The translations under genes were made by a program, and so were the position numbers. DNA of 64,000 nucleotides from Macrostomum hystrix (Eukaryota; Animalia; Platyhelminthes), in contig CATNEN010000003.1 in the NCBI GenBank assembly GCA_950097015.1, positions 15,376,001-15,440,000 on the forward strand. The letters run 5' to 3'. Positions 1,867-10,002 of the stretch are shown here, one piece after another; the stretch's first letter is position 1; each line of letters starts with the position of its first letter. The notes beneath the pieces were generated by a model. The model had not been told where the DNA came from. It searched no databases and saw only the letters and a program-made list of their open reading frames with translations.

Positions 1867-2222
1867 TTAAACTTCACACTCAGATGAATCCATTGGCCTA
1901 TTAGTCACGATCACAAGGCTGGATGTTGGTCTTTGCTGCTGCTGCTGCTGATGTTGCTGATGCTGATGATGATGCTGATGATGATGCTGATGCTGCTGCT
2001 GATGCTGGTGCAGCATGGACGATCGCCTTCTATGAGCGGCTCCGGTTTCGATTCCGGTGGCAGCCGCAGCAGCCAACGATAACCGACGTCGCACCGGTGC
2101 TGGCCGTGGCAGCCAGTCCAACTGTGGATCGTCAAAGTCGCCAACTCCGTAATCGGAGCGTCGACGTTGCAGCTCCTTCATGATGCGACAGAATTCCTGG
2201 CGTAGAAATTGGTCCGATTCTA

Positions 2223-2259
<37 letters not shown>

Positions 2260-5200
2260 ATGATGAAGCATCTCAGTCGACTGCAGTCGTGATTGGACAT
2301 CTACAAGTCGTTGCTCCAGCTCTGCCTCAGTCTGGTTCTCTGGCTGCAGAAGTGCAGCCTCTGGCAAATAGTTCTGCTGCTGCTGCTGCTGCCGTTGCTG
2401 TCGCTGTCTTGGCGGACGATTTGACAAGCCGGTGCCGACTCGAAATTCGAACGCGTCCGATGGAATTCGCCGGTGCTCAAGCAGCTGAGCTAGAGAAGCT
2501 AGCTGCGAAAAATTATTTTACGATTTTTTAGTTGTAAAAGGATTCGAAATCGGGAGTAAAAAGGAAAGTAAAACGTTATTTTCTACTTACAGTAAGCTAA
2601 TCGCGTTTTAATTACCTTTTTGCCGATACAAAAACCTAAGCAAGCTATTATCCTGCATAATTATATCTGTCTTTAAAGGAGAACAAATATTTTAATTTCC
2701 TGTTCGCTTGAATTAACAATTGCTGGAAATATATTTTCAGAGATTATCCTACTAGTGGAATCTGTATGGGATTCCAGGTAATCCTCTCTAGCTACCATTA
2801 TTTCCTCTGGCTGGACTATGGACTCGGTGAAATATAATAAAATCCCTAAACGTAGTTAAATCCAAAACTAATAGTGTAATTAAGCTTATCTCTATATTCC
2901 ACGTCTTTAATTGTTTGCAAAGAAAATTATGTAAACTTAAAGTAATGAAAGAAGTACAAAGGAAGCGACACTGAAAATGGACAGCCAAAACTTTGGAAAG
3001 TAATATCGGAGACTGTAATTTGACATTTTCCAGCAACCGTGACAGCCTGCCAAAACTCGCATTTGACTCATCCAGTCCGTCAGATATTTACGCTCGTAGA
3101 TCGGAAAAAAGAAACAACTTATTTTTGCCTCAAAATAAGAATCAAAAATAAACAAAAATAAACATTAAAAAAGTTTGAAAGTTTGGAAATGTGCCGCAGA
3201 AAACTTCATAATTTAACTCGATCTCTCACTGACTATCCCCACTGATTGTCTGACTCTCAACTTTCTGACTGTCTGACTCTTAACTACCTGGCATTCTGAA
3301 TGTCTGACTCTTAACTACCTGGCATTCTGAATGTCTGACTCTTAACTACCTGGCATTCTGACTGTCTTACTCTTAACTACCTGGCATTCTGACTGTCTGA
3401 CTCTTAAATACCTGACATTCTGAATGTCTGACTCTTAACTACCTGAAATTCTGACTACCTGACTCTTAACTACCTGGCATTCTGAATGTCTGACTCTTAA
3501 CTACCTGACATTCTGACTGTCTGACTCTTAAATACCTGACATTCTGACTGTCTGACTCTTAACTACCTGACATTCTGACTGTCTGACTCTTAACTACCTG
3601 ACTCTCTGACTCTCTGACTCTCTGACTCTCTGACTCTCTGACTCTCTGACTCTCTGACTCTCTGACTCTCTGACTCAGAGGTGTAAATGGCAATCGTCTT
3701 AATATTCATAATTGTAATTGTCGAGTTTATTTTTATATGTTGAGTGGTTCATCCACCGCTTGCACAACAGTGCACAAATCGTGCATCACTAATCCATCCT
3801 CCGATTATAAAATAAAAGTGATACAATAGTCTTAGCTAAAATCAGAGATAATCCATCCAAGTTTCATTCTAATCATTTTCTGTCCTTAATCCTCTTCGTC
3901 TAGTTTGTTATACAAAACGAAAGGATGAGATTAAAATTTTCATTTCGAATTCTTGTATCTATTTATCTATTAGAGTGCTTTCGACAGTAACCTAAAAATA
4001 GTGCACGAGCATATTATGCCTTTGAATTTTTATTAACAAAATCTTGGCTTATAGTTAACAACTGAAATTTTACGTGGTAGAAATAATTAAATACATCGTT
4101 AAATTAAGATTTCATATAATTAGAATTTCCTAGATTTGTGATTTCCTAGAATTATGATTTCCTAGAATTATGATTTCCTAGAATAAATATTTTGTCGTAA
4201 TTATGATTTTTAGAATTTTAATTTCGTGGCATTGGGATTTCGAAAAATTAGGATTTCGTAGAAAAATGATTGCGAAGATTTAGCATTTCGAAGAATTGGA
4301 ATTTCATAGAACTGTGATTTTGAAAAATTGTGATTTAATAGAATTGTGCTCTCGTTGAATAAGGATTTCGTAGAATTGGCATTGCGAAGAATTGGGATAT
4401 CGTAGAATAATGGATTTCGTAGAAAAAATATTTCGGAGAAAAACGATTTCGTAGAAAAAGGATTTCGTAGAAATAGGATTTCGTAGAAAAAGGATTTCGT
4501 AGAATTGACATTGCGAAGAATTGGGATATTGTAGAATTGGGATATCGTAGAATTGGGATTTCGAAGAATTGGGATATTGTAGAATTCAGATATCGTAATT
4601 CGGTAGGATAGGATGATATATCAATTATGCCAGCTATACATGCTTCCAAAGCAGCGGCATGCCAATTAGTAAATAAGCAAACGCAACAGTCATCTGACTG
4701 GCCGGAAACACACAGCAAAATAAAGACAAAGTCGAAACCGCCCAAATTGGGTAGACATTTGCATGGGATGGCTCATTGCTGTCAGGGACAGCCAAATCCA
4801 AGTCACACATGCAACAGACAAGCAAGCAAGGATTTGGGACAAATTAGCGACCTCAAGCTGGCCCTGATCCGGGGGATAATGCATTGCCAACTTGGAAGTA
4901 CAACAACTGCTGCGTAGGCCTTTTGTTGTGTAGGGGTAGAATTAAGGGGGTGGAATGAAGGGAGTGGAATGTAGGGAGTAGAATGTGGGGAGTAGAATGT
5001 AGGGAGTAGAATGTGGGGAGTAGAATGTAGGGAGTAGAATTTGGGGAGTAGAATGTAGGGAGTAGAATGTAGGGAGTAGAATGTAGGGAGTAGAATGAAA
5101 GAAATGGAATGAAGGGAGTAGAATGTAGGGAGTAGAATGAAAGAAATGGAATGAAGGGAGTAGAATGTAGGGAGTAGAATATGGGGAGTAGAATGTACGG

Positions 5201-8200
5201 AGTAGAATGTAGGGAGTAGAATGAAGGTAGTGGAATGAAGGGAGTAGAATGAATACAGTAGAATGAAGGGAGAAGAAAGTGAAGAGTAGAATGAAGGGAG
5301 TAGAATGGAGGAATAGATAGGGAGTGGAATGAAGGGAGTGGAATGAAGGGAGTGGAATGAAGGGAGTGAAATGCATGGAGTAGAATGTAGGGAGTATAAA
5401 GAATGGAGTAGAAAGTAGGGAGCAGAATGAAGGGAGCAGAATGATGGGAATAGAATGAAGGGAGTAAAATGAAGGCAGTATAATATAGGGAGTAGAATGG
5501 CGAAAGGTCAGAACTGTTGCTCGAGTATTCGAGGAAAACTACGCGAAGGGTATCAGTGCCTGTGGAAATTCAGTCCAAGATTATTCCGTTGTAATTAATA
5601 TTGAAAAGTACAGTCGAAACTGTTCCTGCATTAGCAGCGGGATAATAATTATTTCAGGCCGTGGCTTGTAGAATGACCTACTATCACATCTCAATCCCTA
5701 GTCTCTAAGCCTGTGATTTAGGCATTGCAAATATTTAACGCCATTGAATGATTTAGTTTTCATTTAAATTTCGTAAAACCTATTATTTCCAAAGCATTCA
5801 TTTCATGCGGTTGATATTTTACTGTTGTCACCAAATGCTTTTCTATTTCTATCCAGTTTTCCTACCCTCATTTGATTGATTAGGGCTCGTGACAGCTCAC
5901 AATGCCTCACCGCAGGGACAATAGGGGTGGAGGAACAAATGAAATGATGTTTATTATATTTGATATAATTTTTTGTTTTACTCGTATGTAATTTTACCTT
6001 TATCATCAGCTAATTAATTTGTACTTAATTAGGAATGACATCTTTCTGAGAGGTCTGGAGTTCACATTCTAGTCCAGGCATGTAAGTTTGTGTCTTTGGA
6101 CGAGACACTTATTTCACCGAGTTCTCCCTAGCGACGACAATTAAGTGAGGCACACAGATTCTCCCTAGATTCTCCCTAGCGACGACAATTAAGTGAGGCA
6201 CACAGATTCTCCCTAGATTCTCCCTATAGCGACGCACACGGATACTGTAAGCAGGCATCCGCTCACACAGGTGTGTACCTGATACCACTGTAACTGATAC
6301 CTGTACACAGGCCTTGACTTTCTCGTCGTCAGGCAGTGTACACTCTCACTGTGCCTTGGAGGTTGGCCCTCAAGGGCGTAAATTGCACGACAAGCCCCCA
6401 AGCCTTCTCTCCGCGGCTGCACCCCAAATAAATGTGGCCTCGACGCGGAATCGAGCTCAGGGACCTTGACGCGATAGACAAACGCGTTAGATCGCTCTGC
6501 CACTGACCCCCCCCTGATGGCAGGTGATACCTCAGATGAAACTGTACCTGATTTCGCAGGCATTTTGCGATAAGTTTTGGTCTCGCCAGCTCACTAGAGG
6601 CAGCCAGGCAGACTTGATACTGTCCGGCGTACGCTGTCATGGTGGCAGACAACGGGGCCACGGATCTGGGCACCGGACTCCAGACGGCGATGCTAGAAAC
6701 TTGTCGCGCATCCAGGTGCACCGGACAGTCGCTAGGGCCTGCGCGCACGCACACAGCTCTACACGTTGAACTCAAAACGCCTTCGTCGTCTGAGCCATCC
6801 TCGTCGACAAAGTTCTCATGCTCCGGCGTTGAAACTGGACGTTGTCGACGATTTCTGAAATGCCAGACTAGCTGGTCGACTAGATCGCGTCGGCGCTGGC
6901 TCGCACCGTCGATTAGCCGACTCACCAGTCGGGTGTCCAACAGACTAGCTGCCGATTGAAACGTGACGGCGTTTCTGCCGTCTCGATTGCTCCGGTTGCG
7001 AAGCCGCTCGGATTGGCGCCGGGTAAGCCACAGACGCGGCAGGCCGCCTTCAGCGTTCAGAGCCAGACGACGCCAAACTGGCAAGCGGCGCCAGCGAGGC
7101 TCCATGGGGTCCATGTCGACGAAATCGGTATCTGAGTCATCGGAGCTGTCACTGTTGGACTGATGATCCACGATAGCGCGGCAATCGAATGGCACCTCGA
7201 CGCCAAGGAGCTGCTGGTAGGCTCGCAGCGCGCCAGCCAGCAAAGTGAGGAATAGATCCTGCTCCGTGGTTTGCGTCACCTGCGCGGTGGGTCGAGAAGA
7301 GGGAATATTGTACTCTAGTGTACTTTGATGCCCAATATTCTCTGAAACCCCGATGTGATCCCAAACCACGATGGAGCCACTGAATCCCCGATAATGGTGC
7401 TCCTAAACACTCAATGTTATTCCAAATCCTCGAAGGAGCTACGAAATCCCCAAGTGGCACTCCAAAATCATCAAGGTGCAATCCCAAATTCCCGGTGGCG
7501 CTCCCAAATCTACGATGTGATCCTAAATCCCCGTTGTGATCCCAAATCTCCGATGCGATCCCAAATCCTCGATGGAGCTACCAAATCCTCAAGTGGCACT
7601 CCCGAATCTACGACGCGATCCTAAATCCTCCATGGCGATCCTAAATCCCTTTTGGGATCCTAAATCCTCCATGGCGATCCTAAATCCCTTTTGGGATCCT
7701 AAATCCCTGATGTGATCCTAAATCCCTGATGTGATCCTAAATCCCTGATGTGATCCTAAATCCCTCATTTGATCCTAAATCTCCGATGGCACTCCCAAAT
7801 CCCAAGTAGCACTTCAAAAGCCCCGGGAACGCTCATTGATTTCCAATGCGCCCCCTCAAGAAGTCCCTCAGCAACCTAAGTAGTTGATCGCTTTGGGATT
7901 GTGCGAAAGAAAACCGCACAAGTAAAACTCACCTGTTGCGCTCGACGCATTAGACGGCCATCAAGTCGAATTTGCAGCATCCGAAGTGGTGCAGCCGATT
8001 CAGGAGCAGCGGCAGCATTTCCAGCGTCGCTCATCGGACATCGGGGATCCTTGATTGGCGCAGTCCTAGTCGCCGCGCCTGTCGCAGCCGCCAGTCTGAG
8101 CAGGAGGAGGGGAGCTCTAAGGCTGGCTGCTATAGTGGCAGCGGCCACCGATGCGGCCGAAGTGGCCTCTGATTCCAATCTCAAGCGTCGCACAATGGTC

Positions 8201-9470
8201 GCTTGCGTGCCCTCGTCCATTGAGCGCGAGTCGCACAGGACTCGGGTCAAGAGTCGAAAAGCGCCGGACGCGTCCGAGAAGCTGGCGTGCTGTCGATAAA
8301 TCAGCAGGCCACGACAATGCCCCCATTCGCCATCGCAGCTCGCAGCCGGTTGGTAATGCAGCTCCCAGGGCGGCCGGTCGACGTCGAAGGCGTTGACAGC
8401 GCAGTCCTCAAGGTAGGCGGCCAGCTGGTTTGCTGATTCTAATCGCGGCCGGATTTCAATCACGTGAGCGTCGAAGTCGAATTCTTCGGCTGGCGTTTCC
8501 AGCCACGCAATCGAGCCGTCTGGCAGTCGAGCGACTCGCTGCCTGAGTCTGGGCTGGTCGGCCAGGTGGCGACGAACAACTCCGCGAAGCGTAGCCAAGC
8601 TGAGGCATCTGGCAGCTTGGTCGGCAATGTCCAAACGGACAACCAGCGCTGGCGGAGGTTGCACCGAGGTGAGCCAGGCGAGCTCTGCGGTGTTCAGCCG
8701 AACGCTGCGGACCTCCCGCCCGCCACCGTCAGTGACGAATTCTTCGTCGGAGGACGATGAGAACAGATAAAACAACAACAGGGGCAGAAATAGAACAGCA
8801 GCCACGGCTAGAAGCAGCGGTGAGATTAAAATTATACCAAGCACTATGCAACCGTAGCCAGAGCAGCAGCAGCAGCAGCAGCAACAACAGTACCTGGCGA
8901 GGAAGGTCGGTGGCAGAGCGGTTAACGCGTTTGCCTCTGACACAAAGGTCCCTGAGCACGATTCCGCAGCGAGGCCACATTGATTTGGGGCGCAGTGGCG
9001 GAGAGAACTTGTGGGGCTTGTCGTGCAATTTAAGCCCTTGAGGGTCGACCTCCAAGGCACAGTGGCAGTTTACACTGCACGACGTTGAGAAAGTCAGGGC
9101 AGATGTGAGTATGTGCTCAAGAGTCAGCGAAATAGGCAGAATTGACTCCTCGCTGGCTGCGGGTCTAGTGCCACCAAATGATGTGCCATTGCCCGCACAT
9201 ATTGTTAATAACCATATTGTTAATAATTAACAATAATTATTATTTTTATTATTAACAGTACCTGGCGAGCGGTTGAAGCTCCGTCGGGTGCTCGATGGTG
9301 TACAGAGGAGCAATCGAGTACTCAACGGATCCTTCGTTGTTCTCATCAATGATGCGCTCAACATTTTCCTCGTCAGTCTCGGAGTCTGACGACGTCATAA
9401 CGCTTTCGTTGTCAGCAATTTGCGGTTCCTCCTCTTGAATGCCCTCCGGTGGAGAACGATGCATTGACAT
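1867..9470 (-). CDS. WS/DGAT (wax ester synthase/diacylglycerol acyltransferase)-family membrane protein, ~845 aa, 4 exons
   Basis: Exons 9470-9262, 8893-7933, 7279-6548, 2502-1867, all GT-AG and phase consistent. Family motifs: PRLRQRV, FDFDAHV, RPPWELH, TTEQDLFLTLLAGALRAY, C-terminal AYAGQYQV. N-terminal poly-Cys plus TM segment; polyQ/H tail. Confidence 0.8.
3250..3675. repeat. 31-bp minisatellite followed by (ACTCTCTG)n
   Basis: Unit tgtctgactcttaactacctggcattctgaa, ~11 copies; 8-mer run from ~3600. Confidence 0.95.
4120..4600. repeat. Degenerate short-unit tandem repeat (gatttcgtagaattgg-like)
   Basis: Recurring gattt(c)(g/c)tagaa core. Confidence 0.85.
4930..5500. repeat. Purine-rich tandem repeat (gaatg[ta]agggagta)
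   Basis: Directly visible; same family recurs at 63884-64000. Confidence 0.95.
6123..6228. repeat. ~48-bp tandem duplication at the 3' end of SINE copy A
   Basis: ctccctagcgacgacaattaagtgaggcacacagattctccctagatt occurs twice. Confidence 0.9.
6231..6514 (-). mobile_element. tRNA-derived SINE, copy A (3'-truncated), in WS/DGAT intron 3
   Basis: A box TGGCAGAGCG, B-box-like GCTCGATTCC; body shared with five other copies; starts 33 nt after the donor at 6547. Confidence 0.85.
7335..7830. repeat. Degenerate ~19-20-bp tandem repeat (gatcctaaatccctgatgt) filling WS/DGAT intron 2
   Basis: Directly visible. Confidence 0.85.
8902..9253 (+). mobile_element. tRNA-derived SINE, copy B, inserted in a coding exon with 16-bp TSD; forms predicted intron 9261-8894 of the - strand gene
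   Basis: TSD AACAGTACCTGGCGAG at 8886-8901 and 9254-9269; A box TGGCAGAGCGG; (ATT)n-type tail; internal deletion relative to other copies. Confidence 0.9.
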
Positions 9471-10002
9471 TTTTTCAGCTGCTTTCGTCCACCTCTAAGG
9501 GTTCACCTGTGTTGATCAGCTATACGGCAGAATTTAGAATGCAACAGAGCATCGGATTGCTTTAGAGCAAGCAAATCATTAAAGCTCCAATCAGTGGGAG
9601 GGACGAGGGGAGACAAGGTGCAGACAGACAGAATGAGGTAGCAAAAGAGAACGAGAGTATATGCTCAGTCAACAGTCCGAATTGCGGCACTAATTTAGCT
9701 TTCTAAGTCTCCTGTATTGTCTCAATCTTAGCAACGCTATAACAAGTAAATACTTCCCCGCGTTCTATTTTGGCTTAGCGGGCCAATGAGGATTAGGGAA
9801 CTGTTTCTCTCTCTGTCACGCAAAATAAGGCGGAGCTCTTCTGCGAGTGGATGGGAGAGTCACATCAGATTCCACATCACTGTGGCCCAGTGTGCGCGCG
9901 CTGGCAAGAGACTGACTTGACTTTGCCTGCTGCGAACTGGACAAGAGTTGAGAGCCAAAAGGAGTGGAAAATTGCTCGAGGTGGAGAAGCAGGAAGAGAG
10001 GA

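Follow-up and report, generated by a model that had tools for sequence, protein, structure and literature searches.

A short interspersed element as the probable source, through its target-site duplication, of a coding intron in the flatworm Macrostomum hystrix

We analyzed a 64,000-nt stretch of the Macrostomum hystrix genome (contig CATNEN010000003.1, positions 15,376,001 to 15,440,000; hereafter the window), in which a gene on the minus strand carries, within its 5′ coding region, a short interspersed element (SINE) bounded by the two copies of a target-site duplication (TSD). The gene was modeled in four exons of 209, 961, 732, and 636 nt, amounting to 845 codons plus a stop (Table 1), and an in-frame TAG lies nine codons upstream of the exon 1 ATG. 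Judging from the anatomy of the locus and from two paralogs in the same genome, the SINE insertion probably made intron 1 of this gene as an exact new intron. In all sequences below, a slash marks a splice point.

The exons were searched one by one, not as a joined model. Exon 2 matched the Pfam domain WS_DGAT_cat (PF03007) with a score of 29.1 bits, slightly above the curated cutoff of 23.6 (E=1.1e-6). The canonical active-site motif of WS/DGAT proteins is HHxxxDG. This motif was not found at the corresponding place in exon 2 (window 8190-8225), where the gene reads QHASFSDA (YRQHASFSDASG), with the second His and the Gly replaced. At the same place, the M. lignano protein PAA81538.1 (P0001) has QHPSFADG, as does the relative from contig C29, and the protein P0010 has HHCLSDA. 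Because the active-site motif is degenerate, we refer to the gene as WS/DGAT-like only. Members of this flatworm clade of WS/DGAT-like proteins may, from their motifs, be no conventional acyltransferases.

Table 1. Features of the WS/DGAT-like gene and the homologous places in its paralogs L032 and L033 (positions are those of the window unless prefixed)
Feature	Position	Strand	Description
Exon 1	9262..9470	-	ATG at 9470; 209 nt = 69 codons + 2 nt; ends ...IEHPTELQPLA(R)
TSD, upstream copy	9254..9269	-	CTCGCCAG/GTACTGTT; gives exon 1 end and donor GT (9261-9260)
Predicted intron 1	8894..9261	-	368 nt, phase 2; SINE plus one TSD length; splicing predicted from sequence
SINE copy	8902..9253	+ (antisense to gene)	352 nt; A/B-box-like head, core, AT-rich (ATT/AAT-type) tail with 15-nt tandem duplication
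Branch-point-like CGTTAAC	8921..8927	-	Full match to YNYURAY; from antisense SINE head
TSD, downstream copy	8886..8901	-	Gives acceptor AG (8895-8894) and first 8 nt of exon 2
Exon 2	7933..8893	-	961 nt; poly-Cys run, transmembrane segment, WS/DGAT catalytic-type domain; donor CAG/GTGAGT
Exon 3	6548..7279	-	732 nt; donor CAG/GTACAG (6548/6547)
Second SINE copy	6302..6509	- (sense to gene)	3′-truncated; begins 38 nt past exon 3 donor, inside ancestral intron 3
Exon 4 (last)	1867..2502	-	636 nt; acceptor tttttcgcag/CT; stop at 1869-1867
Homologous place in L032	L032:552-1184		...LGLHYPTLAEPRSVRHPTELNPAADLCSWLVRYAGLSLLCLPLLALA... (SVRHPTELNPAADLCSWLVRYAGLSLL...); one uninterrupted stretch, one frame
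Homologous place in L033	L033:632 to ~991		...KTAEHPVESNLLGHYCSTAFNVTVSAILSVPVLLLF... (AEHPVESNLLGHYCSTAF...); contiguous

Repeat finding in the window identified the TSD as a direct repeat of 16 nt, 100% identical between copies that are spaced 368 nt apart, with AG/GT present once in each copy. Read along the minus strand, the coding sequence CAA CCG CTC GCC AG/GTACTGTT leads into an AT-rich stretch and a repeat body of about 300 nt, after which comes GCGTTAACCGCTCTGCCACCGACCTTC CTCGCCAG/GTACTGTT GTT GCT GCT. Exon 1 ends in ...SVEYSIAPLYTIEHPTELQPLA(R), which includes EHPTELQPLA, and exon 2 starts with YCCCCCCCCCSGYGCIVLGIILISPLLLAV..., a Cys run that leads into a transmembrane (TM) helix. 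The SINE copy itself bears a 13-nt internal deletion and a remodeled tail. The original prediction, made from the letters of the window, had placed a SINE antisense within the coding sequence of this gene between two perfect 16-bp repeats; both statements hold, with the repeats at 8886-8901 and 9254-9269, and the boundaries of the SINE family coincide with the TSD.

A genome search returned 2296 first-look candidate copies of the element in the 220-Mb M. hystrix genome, spread over many contigs. Identity was scored for 40 of these candidates, and all 40 were 80-86% identical to the focal SINE, starting at query positions 1-20 and in most cases stopping near position 296; the variable AT-rich tail of the family begins past about this position. 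When 29 copies were aligned together with their flanks, they had in common a body, tails of the ATT/AAT type, and a 5′ end (GGGGGTCGGTGGCAGAGCGG...), which falls at position 8902. By a crude TSD finder, TSDs of 7-20 nt were detected in 18 of 37 SINE copies and fragments (at least 8 nt in 15 of the 18), and seven copies or fragments of the family lie within the 64-kb window. The element is thus short (a body of ~300 nt), non-coding, dispersed, and high in copy number, with TSDs of variable length and a simple-repeat 3′ tail. By these sequence features, both the SINE-type retroposon and its TSD are genuine. Motifs resembling an A box (TGGCAGAGCGG) and a B box (GCTCGATTCC) are visible in the head in the family alignment. 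No tRNA was called in the heads of the focal copy and the least diverged copies (11 by ARAGORN and three by the Rfam tRNA model), and the description of the head as tRNA-derived is an assumption.

Excision at the AG/GT of both TSD copies would join exons 1 and 2 into 209+961 nt, a length divisible by 3, and restore the reading frame. The donor from the upstream copy, CAG/GTACTG, offers six contiguous pairs to U1 (-3 to +3). The donor CAG/GTACAG, no stronger than that predicted for intron 1, belongs to ancestral intron 3, indicating that GTAC-type donors are evidently used in this gene. The downstream copy supplies the acceptor ...ccaccgaccttcctcgccAG/G (CCAG/G). Upstream of this acceptor, the predicted branch A lies at 8922, at a distance of 28 nt, and is separated from it by a C/T-rich tract without AG. 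Branch motif and tract alike derive from the SINE head, of which they are the reverse complement, and both occur in the family consensus of copies without the extra C; the two head substitutions of the focal copy, located between branch point and acceptor, are both C-to-T changes as read on the gene strand and leave the tract pyrimidine. From these signals, both TSD sites are predicted to be used by the spliceosome. The donor that had been proposed, along with its counterpart at 6547 in the same gene, was thus found as described, and removal of 9261-8894 (368 nt) does restore the frame, giving an open reading frame (ORF) of 845 codons. Likewise, the proposed acceptor, the branch-like motif 28 nt upstream, and the pyrimidines from the antisense head are all present; the tRNA nature of that head, which was part of the same claim, was not borne out by ARAGORN or Rfam, neither of which gave a match.

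A functional protein would require a junction at this place. As had been predicted, unspliced RNA stops at once: read-through gives AGG TAC TGT TAA, a stop after three codons. Going upstream from exon 2 in its own frame, one first meets a stop at 9072, with no ATG after it. The first Met of the exon, residue 225, lies past most of the catalytic-type domain and leaves 224 codons of the exon without an in-frame ATG. With no earlier in-frame Met, the TM segment and the greater part of the catalytic-type domain can be translated only if some upstream exon is spliced to 8893 or to a point in frame with it.

We then compared the gene with its relatives. No close ortholog or transcript-derived protein was found in two protein collections (a homologous-protein search with exon 2, and a HMMER search of 1.84 billion representatives). 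The HMMER matches were all distant, the best being P0001, a protein of 842 residues that is 42% identical over the core; one member of the PAA81538.1 cluster is named WSD1 C-terminal domain protein. From the TM segment to the C-terminal ...DFDDP...EV, P0001 aligns collinearly with the model of four exons. We considered P0001 as an ortholog of the focal gene and rejected it, as it is 64-79% identical to an M. hystrix paralog, L032, on contig C29; by this sequence identity, P0001 is the ortholog of L032 and not of the focal gene. A second, more distant paralog, L033, lies on contig C37. An empty-site copy was also sought in the same genome, where exon 1 and exon 2 each closely matched the focal locus only.

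In both paralogs, the place that corresponds to the junction of exons 1 and 2 is contiguous coding sequence (Table 1). The spacing between the HPTE motif and the TM helix is 10-13 residues in L032, L033, P0001, and P0010, the module of P0010 consisting of APLRITKHPTE, 13 residues, and the TM helix. When the two exons were aligned separately to the L032 piece, the match to the exon 1 tail reached residue 91, and that to the exon 2 TM helix began at residue 102. L033 retains TAC TGT T at the site. By these alignments, exons 1 and 2 code for adjacent parts of one conserved unit, which is a single exon in both paralogs. Intron 1 is derived, because both paralogs have the HPTE-TM module in one uninterrupted exon. 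The position of intron 3 (...RNQ/), on the other hand, is common to the focal gene and L032 (...MRAQ/, with CAG/GTGCGA at L032:2599/2600). The only extra material of the focal gene in the HPTE-TM module is an expanded (TGY)n Cys run. This run of nine Cys codons is a microsatellite, (TGT)2(TGC)7, at window positions 8863-8889 on the minus strand, and it begins within the downstream TSD copy. The paralogs have a single Cys at that place, indicating that the Cys repeat grew in the focal gene beside the insertion site.

To estimate how long the SINE has been in place, we compared it with the consensus of the 29 other copies. It differs at 28 of 283 aligned positions (~10%, at the upper end of the sample, which ranges from 3.4 to 10%), and 7 of these differences are strictly private, 12 are shared with one or two copies, and 9 with three or more. 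From these classes, the divergence accumulated in place is estimated at about 2.5-10%. A recently active, already-diverged source is unlikely, because the best match among the 40 scored copies is only 86% identical. The SINE had been described as visibly aged, and the deletion and the 28 substitutions (~10%) bear this out; a precise age in place does not follow, only 7 of the 28 differences being private. Within the family alignment, a GT/CA-rich stretch (GTACACACCTGTGTGAGTGTGTG) at SINE positions ~185-215 is a deletion hot spot, different parts of which have been lost in the focal copy and in copies L015, L024, L028, and L030. Because of this hot spot, the 13-nt deletion of the focal copy is an unreliable marker of age.

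Past the predicted junction, 320+244+211 codons and the split codon, about 776 in all, are open, and both TSD copies are intact, in agreement with the original prediction. We simulated neutral change starting from the present exons, with the rate of insertions and deletions (indels) set to the range among SINE copies. With 3% substitutions and no indels, exons 2 and 3 (564 codons) were still open in 17% of trials. With 0.003-0.007 indels per nt and 3-10% divergence, they were open in at most 0.3% of trials; at the same indel rates, the 224 codons of exon 2 that precede its first Met were open in 0.2-9%. Since exons 2 and 3 would rarely stay open under neutrality, the gene has most likely been under selection since the SINE insertion.

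Taken together, the anatomy of the locus, the paralog comparison, and the logic of the open frame and the start codon argue that an exact new intron arose from the SINE insertion by way of its TSD, a reading to which we assign a probability of about 0.72. The SINE would have retrotransposed in antisense orientation into 5′ coding sequence that at that time formed one exon of the WS/DGAT-like gene of M. hystrix, and the 16-nt target that was duplicated would by chance have contained AG/GT. The upstream TSD copy would then have become the donor CAG/GTACTG and the downstream copy the acceptor ...CCAG/G, with the antisense SINE head contributing a pyrimidine tract and a consensus branch point. A cut at this shared point in each TSD copy would remove the SINE and one TSD, 368 nt in total, and bring back the original codons; the gene would thereby have kept its function, and the insertion would have survived as intron 1. 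Of the claim that this is a SINE-born intron, the anatomy, the exact frame, the intron-less paralogs, and the lack of an alternative start stand, with splicing predicted from them; its novelty was overstated, and the tRNA origin of the SINE was not confirmed.

Several points weigh against this reading. A search for RNA sequencing runs over window positions 6500-9520 listed none. The donor lacks consensus bases at +4 to +6, and the protein collections, which hold neither this protein nor a close ortholog, provide no annotated or transcript-derived junction. The age of the insertion in place is uncertain, as the 9 of 28 differences found in at least three other copies may predate it. The paralogs show intron 1 to be derived but, being distant (30-43% identity), cannot date it. 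Lastly, under neutrality all 32 nt of the TSD would have a chance of 0.03-0.38, according to age, of remaining unchanged, and we rejected the intact TSD as proof of selection, this argument being weak.

Three other accounts of the locus were weighed against a SINE-born intron. The SINE might not be removed, or only rarely, the locus then representing a null or strongly reduced allele in the inbred line or a young pseudogene whose frame has not yet decayed. The weak donor CAG/GTACTG would fit this account, as would the small number of strictly private differences (7 of 28), by which the insertion is perhaps younger than it looks, and the paralogs could cover the function of the gene. Against it, none of the AG/GT, the branch point, and the AG-free pyrimidine tract is missing, no sibling among the 40 scored of the 2296 candidates points to a recently active diverged source (86% identity at best), and even at 3% neutral divergence the 564 codons would hardly ever have stayed open at the indel rate of the family (at most 0.3% of trials). 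We therefore regard retention of the SINE as unlikely, although it is the most probable of the three. Alternatively, the SINE could have landed in a pre-existing intron, the repeats at its ends being coincidental. The second SINE copy of the same gene does occupy an older intron, and we take that copy as an ordinary intronic insertion and as a contrast case. At intron 1, by contrast, the 16-nt repeat adjoins the exact ends of the element, with its halves coding on both sides, the whole intron consists of the SINE and one TSD with no other intronic sequence, and both paralogs are intron-less at the site, which makes a pre-existing intron very improbable.

It could also be that the gene works without exon 1, the acceptor at 8894 being joined to another upstream exon or to a trans-spliced leader and the SINE marking a new 5′ end. 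Around 20% of M. hystrix genes are trans-spliced to a spliced leader (PMC10468722), and the acceptor, with its branch point and pyrimidine tract, is a good one. Exon 2, however, offers no in-frame Met before residue 225 from which such a message could be translated. In Macrostomum, the last bases of the spliced leader are AUG; if joined at 8893, that AUG would be followed by GTA CTG..., a frame that stops after about 55 codons at 8729 and is that of the ORF 8729..9055. In addition, an ORF that begins with ATG has been preserved in exon 1; it extends exactly as far as the donor and includes the HPTE motif conserved in the family. An exon-1-free gene is accordingly rather improbable, less so than insertion into a pre-existing intron and more so than a retained SINE.

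The origin of new spliceosomal introns in animals is still poorly documented. The original prediction presented a SINE-made intron as new, which was an overstatement, as SINE-born introns and introners of the non-LTR (long terminal repeat) class (PMC12130899) precede it. Sela et al. (2007; PMC2394776) describe a SINE-born coding intron in rice catalase A and Alu-born introns in human. As proposed for the present case, an exonic SINE becomes a new intron there, and the rice intron, like ours, is in coding sequence. The human Alu introns are alternative, lie in untranslated regions, and use splice sites inside the Alu or in the old exon; the focal case, unlike them, is in a flatworm, with both splice sites from the AG/GT of the TSD and a predicted exact excision. 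Tandem duplication of an AGGT-containing exon segment, which the same paper cites, is alike in that two AG/GT copies act as donor and acceptor and the message is restored. In the focal case, the duplication is instead the staggered-cut TSD of retrotransposition, and the body of the intron is a transposon and not exon sequence. Exonization of antisense SINEs (Alu, MIR, and B1; PMC2394776) is alike in that an antisense SINE gives the pyrimidine tract of a 3′ splice site. In exonization, it is the poly(A) tail, in antisense, that supplies the tract, and an intron gains a new exon, whereas here the branch point and the tract would come from the head and an exon would gain a new intron. The mechanism at a single locus is thus not new, and the locus would be a clean new example of a known, rarely documented form of intron gain.

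Introners (PMC9860276; PMC12130899; review, PMC11282704) resemble the focal case in that insertion of a transposable element and a co-opted TSD yield a spliceable intron. Among classified introner families, ~82% are DNA transposons with terminal inverted repeats and ~5% non-LTR retrotransposons (Gozashti et al. 2025, PMC12130899), in keeping with the earlier statement that known introners are mostly DNA transposons. In the 2022 survey, introners turned up in no more than two animal groups (Gozashti et al., PMC9860276), and SINEs and flatworms are unmentioned in either paper. Classical introners are defined by the many near-identical introns that they form, and in most cases they bring one splice site with them. 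The focal SINE, unlike them, is general-purpose, and most of its copies lie elsewhere than in coding sequence; a branch point and a pyrimidine tract are all that it contributes, and it needs a chance AG/GT in the target.

These features raise the possibility of a retroposon 'introner' in an animal, namely the abundant SINE family of M. hystrix. The ready branch point and pyrimidine tract of its antisense head would turn any exonic insertion with an AG/GT-containing TSD into a scarless intron, and tens to hundreds of coding introns could be new in the lineage in this way, the focal intron being one of them. We hold this idea tentatively, at somewhat less than even odds. Among 36 other SINE copies and fragments, none restores a long ORF with AG/GT on the ORF strand. 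The family-wide 'SINE introner' idea is the interesting part of the analysis: if true, it would provide a tractable animal system for the conversion of retroposons to introns, Macrostomum being culturable and M. lignano transgenic. The single locus is in itself a useful worked example, as its whole history is readable from sequence, with the element identified, the TSD giving both splice sites, uninterrupted paralog exons, and the contrast of an ancestral intron.

The other introns of the gene family show features of their own. Intron 2 of the focal gene (7280-7932, minus strand) is filled by a minisatellite of ~12 nt (GGATTTAGGATC...). At the place of this intron, L032 has contiguous coding DNA, residues 246-558 of P0001 mapping to L032:1468-2427, and L032 has an intron at 1170-1468 where the focal gene is contiguous. 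These reciprocal differences indicate that intron positions are fluid in this small family. The same 7-mer, CAG/GTGA, occurs at both junctions of intron 2 (7935-7929 and 7282-7276) and may be a TSD-like trace or mere splice consensus. As in focal intron 2, the introns of the paralogs consist mostly of minisatellites (L032:2600-3040 and L033:1000-1300), with units such as GAGTCCCGATTCTTCT and CATAGACTAGCAATCCACTGCCTCACACA.

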